A stretch of 63,805 nt of DNA, the filler included, from Choristocarpus tenellus KU-1152 (taxonomy: Eukaryota; Protista; Phaeophyceae), in NCBI GenBank assembly GCA_964200185.2. It is 10 parts of 10 records of this genome, joined end to end, with 100 filler letters (N's around TTAATTAATTAA, not from the genome) between each part and the next. Parts side by side here need not be neighbours in the genome. Positions count along the whole stretch, not along the records: positions 8,789 to 27,273 come from CAXNAD020000546.1; 9 more parts are not named here. One strand, given 5' to 3'. A program made the translations under genes and the position numbers. Below are positions 13,478-25,514 of the stretch, piece after piece (position 1 is the stretch's first letter; every line of letters starts with the position of its first letter). The notes beneath the pieces are model-generated. The model was not told where the DNA came from and made no database searches. It was given only the letters and a program-made list of their open reading frames with translations.

Positions 13478-16400
13478 CTAACTCTCAGGAAGCAGGCCAG
13501 TCCTTCTGTACCACTCATTCTCTGACAATACTTGTATTCCCAGTGACCGTGCTTGCTCCAATTTTCCTCCTGGATTCATGCCAACCACAACAACATCAGT
13601 TCGTTTTGATATAGAGCCAGTCACTCGAGCTCCCATGTCTCTTGCAGCGGCTTGCACCTCAGCTCGCTTCATCCTTCAACACATCAACACACAGATCAAT
13701 TAACATGGACAAATGGACAAAGAGTGGAGTTTTAGTTTGGGGATGCTCGTTGGGATGAGAGTGGGACGACCAACTCTGCTTCATGCTTCATGATAAATTG
13801 TGAAATGTATGACCACAACTCTTCTTAGCACCCTATCCACTTTGTGCGGCTCACTGATTTGGCAGCATGCTGTGTGATTCATACCAAATCACCACCTAGG
13901 AACAAATAAAAAATGTGCATTGAATCCTTCAACAGAAGTACTCCCGTTTTAGTTTTGGGAAGGATTTTCAAGTACGGTCGGTTGAACAACCCCGAGGCAA
14001 GACGATGATGACTTGCAATACCAGTTCAAGGCCGATCCAAATTCATTGTAAAACCGAGCCATCTAACCCTAAAACCCTAACCATCTAACCTTGAGGAACT
14101 GTCGAAAAAAAAAAGAAGGTAGCACCTTTGCAACTAAGGGCACTTCTGTAGAGCATTGCAACAGAAAGCAGGGGTGAAATCATTTCCACCAAACTACCAT
14201 TGCACTTTTTATGGTGCACCAATCCATGCCTTATCCTTACCATACCTAAGGCTGTGCACCACAACTCTCTGGAGGTCACACCCAGCATATCAGTCAGTCT
14301 TCGCACCAGACCAAGCACACCCAGCATCACCTCACCTGGCCAGGCTCCCTGTGAACACAACTGTCTTTCCCATGACCCATGCCCGTGCAGCCTCAGCCCC
14401 TGATACTCCCTGGTCATTGACTGACCCTAGTAGTGGAAGCATTCTCTGTATTCCTCCCCTCCCATCACTCTTCTCAATAAAGTGCACCTCCTTTGCTAAC
14501 GCCAGCACCACCTCTTGGTTGCTCTTCGCCTCTGCAAACTGCACCAGAGAATTCAATATGGCAGGGCCCATGCCTTGAATCCCCTTGAAAGGCTCAAGGG
14601 CTGATTCTTGTCCACCCTCTTCACATACCTCAGCCGCTCTGAAAGTTATCATAGGACATTCCAGGGTGCTCTTCAGCAATGGGAAGAATGATGGCTTTTG
14701 AGATGGAAGATGGTAAGCAACTAATCCGTACAATACAGAGCTATATCGACAAGGTATAATTTTGACATCACATTTTTGTCAGTCAGTACATCACTAACAG
14801 TACACACTGCAGTGGAGCAGGTTGAGATGAGAACACATCAAGACCATATGGCCCTTATGATCATTTTTGGGAAGAGAGCACAAGAAATGTTTGGTTGACA
14901 ACAATATGTAATAACTTGAGAGTGACAGTATCTTAGAGGGTATGAGTTTTTCCCTGTTTTCCATTTGGGGCTTGGCTTCCCACTGTTTTTATTATTATTA
15001 CATTTTACCTACACCAAAATGTTTCGGAGTATGTAAAATGTGTATATTATGAAAAGGTGTCAGGAACAAGGATATTGACATCTCTTAACAAACATGATAG
15101 CCAAAATTACATCAAAATTGCAACCTTGGATTTGGGCCTCCAAATGGACGCAACTCTACCCTCTAAGATACTTTGACTCTCGATCATGATACCCCCTGGC
15201 TTGTATAGTGCTACAGCATGAATCCTCGCCTTCATCTGCCTTCTGATTAATTGCAATACTTGGGTATTGTGGATATTACTATCAACATGGGCACTACAGC
15301 ATGCCTCACAACAGCACTGCAAGGAATCTGGGATTTGGACAATACTTCACATAGAGTCCAACACCACACCTTAAAACCTTAAAAGACAAGGCCAACTATT
15401 TTTTTCCACCCCTGTGAAGAATGATAACTACCATCTACTAATATATCAATTGTCACCTGTAGTAGAGGTATTACAGTGATATCCCTCCAAATATTATGTC
15501 AGAAGGAAAGGAGAGTAAGCATGTCTAATGTCTAAAGCTAAGGTTATCACCACTACACAATTAGCATTTGTGAGTGACAAAACAAGAAAAAAGTCAATAC
15601 TATCCCCTGAATTGAAATACATGACTAGTATTTGGTATTTGATAAAACACATACCTACCAATCCTATCAAAAGGAGGAGAGGACAAAATAGCCAGAGCAC
15701 TGCAAAATGTCTAGCCAATCACTTGTCACTCTCTGCATCACACCTTGAAAGAGCACCCCACCATTCCTCAAAATTATCCCCAAAACTGGCTGCCATGATG
15801 TCTGCCATTCTGACTCCCACATGTCTAATACCCAGTGCACAGATAAACCTGACATGTAACCATAAGGACATTCCAGGTTGCTTTACTCAATGATCTTTAA
15901 CTACTTGTTCTGGGTGCACGTCTTGTCGCTCCTGCTAACATTATGGAGTTGTTATCAGGATACCACTCTTATTAATCAAATGTCATTATTCCTTGTCACT
16001 GTTTCATAGTGTTTGTTACAGTCTTTGCCCTACTGTACTGTACAAGGGCTGCACTGTATCTAGCGTATCCTTATTACTACTAATAGCATTAATAATAATC
16101 TACTTACACCAATATAAACACTGCTTAAAAAAATGAAATTTTCTAAAAAACAACAGTAAATAGGAGCAGGGCGTGTTGCAAGGCAATGTGTTAATTCCAA
16201 TCGATGAATGTCACACCAACGGCACAAATGTTGCAATCAGTGCAATCAGTAACTATATTTCGCCTGTGTCCTCCCAGTCTTACTGTGACTACAGTAGTTA
16301 ACTTCATATTATTATACACCACCAGTAAGCTGGAAGGATGATGAGATTGTATAAATTTCCCTATGCAACTTTTTTTCTTTATCAACACTAATAGTATCAT

Positions 16401-25400: not shown

Positions 25401-25514
25401 AAAGGCCCTCATCGATAGACAGGTATCTGTATGGCTTACTTTGAATACCATTCCTTGGCCGATTGGCGCCAACAGGGCACACAATGCGATAACAAATCCA
25501 GGTAACAAGGACAT
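13478..25514 (-). CDS. ligA: NAD+-dependent DNA ligase (bacterial LigA family), 12 exons, about 1157 aa, with N-terminal extension
   Basis: Exons 25366-25514, 24641-25226, 23480-24370, 22870-23046, 22105-22203, 21263-21405, 20118-20298, 18533-18648, 17185-17712, 15744-15848, 14336-14638, 13478-13673; all GT-AG and phase-compatible; 3474 nt with no internal stop. Motifs: domain Ia [82 protein letters not shown]4 zinc finger, four HhH, BRCT. Exon 1 is the least certain. Confidence 0.95.
14920..15179 (+). mobile_element. MITE family A copy in ligA intron 10
   Basis: GAGTGACAGTATCTTAGAGGGTA ... TACCCTCTAAGATACTTTGACTC. Confidence 0.85.
16785..16870. repeat. (AACAAT)n-like microsatellite in ligA intron 9
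   Basis: Imperfect AACAAT/AAC iterations with a duplicated AACATGAATCAATA. Confidence 0.7.
18175..18299. repeat. 17-bp minisatellite (TGTCCATGCTAATAGTA, about 7 copies) in ligA intron 8
   Basis: Head-to-tail units with no spacers. Confidence 0.9.
18820..18884. repeat. 20-bp perfect inverted repeat enclosing (TAACCC)3
   Basis: AATGGTGACTAACACCAATG (18820-18839) and CATTGGTGTTAGTCACCATT (18865-18884). Confidence 0.9.
19722..19849. repeat. 53-bp direct duplication flanking a telomeric-repeat insert
   Basis: 19722-19774 equals 19797-19849, separated by AGGGTTAACCCTAACCCTAACC. Confidence 0.9.
20590..20615. repeat. interstitial telomeric tract (TAACCC)4
   Basis: Directly visible. Confidence 0.85.

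Follow-up and report, generated by a model that had tools for sequence, protein, structure and literature searches.

Which DNA could a bacterial-type ligase serve in the nucleus of a brown alga? Ligation in organelles has been ascribed to ATP-dependent enzymes: reviews of plant and red-algal organelles list only these (PMC4166229, PMC6728418), a 2019 review states that NAD+-dependent ligases have been identified only in eubacteria (PMC6728418), and for Arabidopsis the plastid DNA ligase is given as unclear (PMC4166229). A first-pass annotation of a 63,805-nucleotide stretch of joined Choristocarpus tenellus records (the window, to which all positions below refer) proposed a complete, spliced, NAD+-dependent DNA ligase (LigA) of bacterial type, domesticated for organelle DNA. 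Here we consider the gene, its protein, its origin and its probable destination.

RESULTS

Gene structure and transcription

The LigA gene comprises 12 exons on the minus strand, running from an ATG at 25514 to a TAG at 13478, with GT–AG borders, matching phases and no internal stops:

25366–25514, minus, exon 1: Met1, hydrophobic signal-like stretch (residues 8–15), Met22, Met35 and start of a basic presequence; RNA contig from about 25502 to 25364
24641–25256, minus, exon 2: long extension rich in Ser and Arg, then the first helix of domain Ia (AHDMLYY); acceptor set by RNA joint
23480–24370, minus, exon 3: domain Ia (D..YD), motif I EAKIDG with the adenylated Lys, ATRGDG; PF01653, E = 9e-49; RNA joints
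22870–23046, minus, exon 4: motif IV DGVVYK; adenylation domain by Pfam; RNA; conserved borders
22105–22203, minus, exon 5: motif V (RWAIAHKF); RNA; conserved borders
21263–21405, minus, exon 6: OB fold (VGRTG, TLHN); PF03120, E = 3.8e-20; RNA
20118–20298, minus, exon 7: motif VI RAGDVIP and first half of the zinc finger (CPAC); OB match spans exons 6 and 7; RNA
18533–18648, minus, exon 8: remaining half of the zinc finger, then HhH1; loose end of RNA contig matches; conserved borders
17185–17712, minus, exon 9: acidic low-complexity insertion and HhH2; single exon with borders conserved in three orthologous loci
15744–15848, minus, exon 10: HhH3 (LGIRHVG); conserved borders
14336–14638, minus, exon 11: HhH4 and beginning of BRCT; acceptor may be 14638 or 14668
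13478–13673, minus, exon 12: BRCT domain and stop; PF00533, E = 3e-9

The in-phase check of these exons was made with exon 2 starting at 25226, which is 30 nt shorter and leaves the phase unchanged. Exons were searched singly, while whole-protein searches used the deposited C. tenellus model (CAM9194612.1, hereafter P0001; an unnamed product on a contig of 18,485 nt). The C4 zinc finger is weak in the single-exon Pfam searches because an intron splits the domain between exons 7 and 8. Frames, borders, Pfam domains and key residues all agree with the proposed in-phase splicing of 12 exons into an intact LigA. The GC content of the exons is 45–58% and that of the long introns 36–44%.

Three public runs (X1, X2 and X3) contain the locus, the type of X3 not being on record. 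X3 yields a spliced contig of 2090 nt (depth 66) that skips introns 1–6 exactly, the skipped pieces being bounded by CT..AC; at 20117 its loose end carries the sequence of exon 8, which joins exon 7 to exon 8. Since this contig is free of introns 1–6, the gene is transcribed and spliced; splice joints are absent at the locus in X1 and X2. The RNA joint gives an intron 1 of 109 nt, and thus an exon 2 start at 25256 and a protein of ∼1167 aa from the first Met; an acceptor at 25226 fits the phase but was rejected on the same joint. At 21424–21425, on the edge of a poly-A run before the exon 6 acceptor, X1 and X2 show two A>T differences, either an allele or an assembly error.

Comparison with three orthologous loci, L120 (Scytosiphon) and the brown-alga-like L121 and L122, places the borders of exons 4–10, the acceptors of exons 3 and 12 and the donor of exon 11 at the same codon and phase in all three. 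The exon 3 donor is not projectable onto the orthologues (insertions), and the exon 11 acceptor, in a variable linker, differs among the loci. The RNA check proposed for the 11 junctions was therefore successful in part: introns 1–6 and the join to exon 8 are seen in X3, and introns 8–11 are supported by conserved orthologue borders, the exon 11 acceptor excepted. The NCBI model differs from ours in starting at Met35, in cutting a 108-nt in-frame intron from exon 9 and in adding an exon near 15258–15173 that overlaps the end of a miniature transposon (MITE). The orthologues give no support to the extra intron or the extra exon, and we favour the 12-exon reading for exon 9 and the exon 10 donor.

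The encoded protein

P0001 passes the equivalog cut-offs for LigA (PRK07956, 650 bits versus 369; TIGR00575, 593.5 versus 444.45) and falls below that of the LigB model (121.9 versus 498). Among solved structures it is closest to E. coli LigA (PDB 2owo, E = 1e-122). When P0001 is aligned to enterobacterial LigA with E. coli numbering, the NMN-binding residues of domain Ia, Y22, H/Y23, D32, Y35 and D36, correspond to Y219, Y220, D229, Y232 and D233; a Tyr where E. coli has His23 is a common variant. The catalytic residues E113, K115, D117, R136, E173, R200, R208, D285, K290, K314, R333 and R379 are kept, with motif I KxDG and motifs III–VI represented in P0001 by E349, K351, D353, R372, E447, R474, D565, K570, K594, R613 and R659, and all four zinc cysteines (C707, C710, C725 and C731) are present. 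The OB fold, C4 zinc finger, four HhH motifs and BRCT domain were all found.

The protein shares with bacterial LigA (E. coli, 2owo; PRK07956/TIGR00575; the alphaproteobacterial branch) the order of domain Ia, adenylation domain, OB fold, C4 zinc finger, four HhH and BRCT, as well as the catalytic residues, but it is encoded in the nucleus by a gene interrupted by 11 spliceosomal introns, and it has a leader of ∼220 aa and, relative to enterobacterial LigA, seven internal insertions of 14–92 aa, all between conserved motifs. As judged from its sequence, the gene is one for a complete NAD+-dependent-type DNA ligase, and we infer that the enzyme uses NAD+.

Genomic context

Two kinds of repeat are interleaved with the exons:

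14918–15181, no strand assigned: MITE in intron 10, with 25-nt terminal inverted repeats
18839–20615, no strand assigned: several short interstitial (TAACCC)n tracts, in introns 7 and 6

The intron 10 MITE is a member of a large host family, with 5618 candidates at a first look through the genome and, among the 40 that were scored, copies on other contigs at 87–90% identity; the TAACCC tracts also occur at an unrelated host locus. The earlier argument that the MITE and the TTAGGG tracts speak against contamination is therefore borne out, and splicing, the many introns and the interleaved host repeats exclude a bacterial contaminant.

LigA is single-copy, the genome containing one LigA adenylation domain, at this locus. 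Elsewhere in the same genome (L007:1500-1670; G000:C13059) lies an exon from an ATP-dependent DNA ligase that by eye resembles Lig4, so that nuclear ligation is probably covered; a genome search with PF04675, uninformative for short exons, gave no match. Family A polymerase exons are found on three contigs.

Several other features lie on the contig. The intron 10 MITE has a second, diverged copy at 26885–27147, and the start of a third lies at the contig end (27206–27273). Intron 8 carries a tandem array of seven copies of a 17-nt unit (18175–18296). An intronless ORF on the plus strand (11337–12491; 384 aa, or 299 aa from a Met at 11592) lies tail-to-tail with the ligase gene; it has no Pfam match and has a paralogue on G000:C5804 (83% identity). 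The stretches 9290–10770 and 25620–26800 are GC-richer, with broken reading frames, and by eye resemble decayed pieces of non-LTR retroelements; the ORFs tested from them gave no Pfam match.

Orthologues and selection

Orthologues were found in Cladosiphon, Undaria, Scytosiphon, Hapterophycus, Phaeothamnion, Chrysoparadoxa and Tribonema, together with further eukaryote-like sequences. The survey suggested by the first-pass annotation thus recovers a family across brown algae, Phaeothamnion, Chrysoparadoxa and Tribonema, in searches that were swamped by bacteria; every named member of the clade is a plastid-bearing ochrophyte, and four members are of unknown taxon. An ESM Atlas cluster holds 209 LigA-like proteins, 77% of them eukaryotic and mostly chlorophyte where the phylum is known. 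Against the three orthologous loci, pN is ∼0.2 and pS ∼0.8 (saturated) over ∼270 codons, which amounts to strong purifying selection rather than neutral drift. Ochrophyte LigA is a real, conserved and uncharacterised family. One orthologue from a eukaryote transcript, P0072 (L006:1-262), has an in-frame hydrophobic signal-like stretch upstream of its called Met that lacks an ATG, possibly a non-AUG start or an assembly error.

Origin

After the algal orthologues, the named top matches are almost all alphaproteobacterial, with 41–46% identity to alphaproteobacterial LigA. In FastTree and IQ-TREE (LG+C20) analyses the algal sequences form one clade (support 98–99) within Alphaproteobacteria (96–99), placed deep and beside long-branch lineages, where long-branch attraction could shift the exact position. 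An alphaproteobacterial affinity of the donor is thus shown at the level of sequence, and the donor may have been the mitochondrial endosymbiont or a later alphaproteobacterium. P0122, a long branch, joins the algal clade (99) in two smaller trees but not in the two larger ones. A cyanobacterial origin was set aside on the ranking of matches, in which no named cyanobacterium came out on top; the trees contained no named cyanobacteria. None of 27 ligases from viral contigs joins the algal clade.

The LigA of the red alga Porphyridium purpureum (P0074, KAA8496128.1) groups with Chlamydiae (97–99) and was therefore probably acquired separately, which suggests that eukaryotes gained LigA more than once. 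A single origin with Porphyridium is disfavoured by the free trees, though the AU test does not reject a common clade (p = 0.119). P0074 is a candidate for chlamydia-to-alga transfer, and is absent from the organellar ligase table of PMC4166229. A bacterial LigA, P0272 (L088:10001-13015), carries its N-terminal domain Ia region three times in tandem (twice by Pfam).

The leader

Some 220 residues precede domain Ia. From Met1 the leader has a hydrophobic core (8-residue hydropathy 3.27) followed by Met22 and a basic, Ser/Thr-rich stretch. The same two-Met arrangement is seen in Cladosiphon and Scytosiphon, with 8-residue hydropathy of 3.2–3.3 across the three algae and Met24 in place of Met22 in the latter two; weaker two-Met leaders occur in Chrysoparadoxa, Tribonema, P0020 and P0271. 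Over at most 25 residues from the second Met, the charge is +4/−1 in Choristocarpus, +8/−1 in Cladosiphon and +5/0 in Scytosiphon, and the N-terminal extension contains 20 R, 3 K and 10 D/E in 188 aa. In complex-plastid targeting, the ASAFAP motif places Phe, or another aromatic residue or Leu, at +1 after signal cleavage (PMC4329603); here, residue +1 of the likely site is Met in the brown algae, Phe in P0271 (after Ser-Trp-Ser) and plausibly Leu in Chrysoparadoxa. The RNA contig ends ∼12 nt short of Met1, and such contigs cannot show starts; a further in-frame Met lies ∼20 codons upstream of Met1.

Two-Met leaders of this design have been verified by GFP as dual-targeting in diatom aminoacyl-tRNA synthetases (PMC4494062) and predicted to act likewise for a haptophyte POP (PMC6523293), and dual targeting is reported to be ancestral in ochrophytes (PMC5462543). 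The Choristocarpus leader resembles those of the diatom proteins sent to both plastid and mitochondrion, a likeness seen here in hydropathy and charge counts, with cleavage sites judged by eye. LigA is probably organellar. Of the original proposal of a domesticated bacterial ligase for organelle DNA, the bacterial origin and an intact gene that is spliced, transcribed and under selection stand, and the organellar role is probable from the leader.

DISCUSSION

Our results favour, with somewhat better than even confidence, a single-copy nuclear LigA of alphaproteobacterial origin that is dual-targeted to plastid and mitochondrion and serves organelle DNA. Vertical descent of the gene would reach back at least to the ancestor shared by brown algae, Phaeothamniophyceae, Chrysoparadoxa and xanthophytes. 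Homology to E. coli LigA suggests a mechanism in which domain Ia would bind the NMN half of NAD+, the motif I Lys (K351 of P0001) would become adenylated and AMP would pass to the 5′ phosphate of the nick, while the OB fold, zinc finger and HhH domains are predicted to clamp the duplex during sealing; likely substrates are Okazaki-fragment and repair nicks in organelle DNA. Translation from Met1 would give an ER signal and transit peptide for the four-membrane plastid; starting further downstream, at Met22 or Met35, it would yield a basic presequence for the mitochondrion, and both organelles would thus be supplied by one gene.

A ligase of the mitochondrion only, made from Met22 or Met35 with the upstream hydrophobic stretch incidental or part of the UTR, seems fairly unlikely. 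It would suit the alphaproteobacterial origin, the Arg-rich and acid-poor extension, the Met35 start of the NCBI model and the absence of the ASAFAP Phe in brown algae, and Paulinella does have a ligA copy with a mitochondrial peptide (PMC9450145); yet three brown algae, and distant orthologues as well, have a hydrophobic segment between Met1 and Met22/24, and a UTR is not expected to keep such a segment. That the enzyme is confined to the plastid or periplastid space, filling the place of a plastid ligase stated to be unidentified in Arabidopsis (PMC4166229), is an unlikely reading in our view. The signal-like N-termini across the clade, the Ser-Trp-Ser followed by Phe of P0271 and the plastids of all named members are in line with it, but the second Met and the basic peptide are likewise conserved, and among stramenopiles the survey covered photosynthetic ones.

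We regard a back-up ligase for repair in the nucleus or cytosol, or an enzyme whose cofactor use has changed, as very improbable. The BRCT domain, the long low-complexity insertions and the ochrophyte POP polymerases that lack clear targeting signals (PMC6523293) could be cited in favour, against which stand the ∼220-aa leader, the intact NMN-binding residues of domain Ia and the presence of ATP-dependent ligases. Least probable of all, and rejected here, is a giant-virus insertion or bacterial contaminant: the gene is spliced, has many introns and is interspersed with repeats of the host, its nearest relatives are alphaproteobacterial and the 27 viral-contig ligases sampled group elsewhere. 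Such a source would be conceivable in that endogenous giant viruses occur in brown algae and NAD+ ligases are known from some large DNA viruses.

The favoured dual-targeted ligase has partial parallels elsewhere. Plant, red-algal and yeast organellar LIG1 isoforms and animal LIG3 share its proposed role in organelle ligation, and are made from alternative start codons (PMC4166229, PMC6728418), but unlike LigA they are ATP-dependent eukaryotic enzymes without domain Ia. Porphyridium KAA8496128.1, labelled ‘DNA ligase (NAD(+))’, is likewise a eukaryotic nuclear LigA with an N-terminal extension, and differs in its grouping with Chlamydiae. A precedent is Paulinella, for which nuclear ligA (K01972) copies with chromatophore (crTP) and mitochondrial (mtTP) targeting peptides are published (PMC9450145, PMC7826189), so that the kind is already known. 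By published description, Paulinella is likewise a photosynthetic eukaryote whose nucleus encodes an NAD-type ligase predicted to be targeted to organelles, but it has a separate copy for each organelle and compensates for chromatophore gene loss. The Porphyridium and Tribonema proteins are, moreover, already auto-annotated as NAD+ ligases in UniRef (the latter as ‘DNA ligase (NAD(+))’). The novelty first attached to a eukaryotic LigA is weakened by these annotations, by the largely eukaryotic Atlas cluster and by Paulinella. No study of ochrophyte LigA was found in the literature searched, most subscription journals lying outside that search.

A more speculative proposal, to which we assign a low probability, is that ochrophyte LigA descends from the proto-mitochondrion's own ligase, was kept in the stramenopile nucleus and, by way of an upstream start codon, was redirected at a later stage to the secondary plastid; perhaps it was also kept in other lineages of the Atlas cluster. 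If so, these algae would have in LigA their plastid DNA ligase and, at the same time, a remnant of the ancestral mitochondrial replisome.

The value of the finding is tempered by the existing automatic annotations and the Paulinella precedent. Nevertheless, a conserved and expressed LigA in brown and yellow-green algae gives a major algal group a concrete organelle-ligase candidate. An organelle LigA would link the sealing of organelle DNA to the supply of NAD+, and the ochrophyte enzyme might preserve part of the replication kit of the mitochondrial ancestor.
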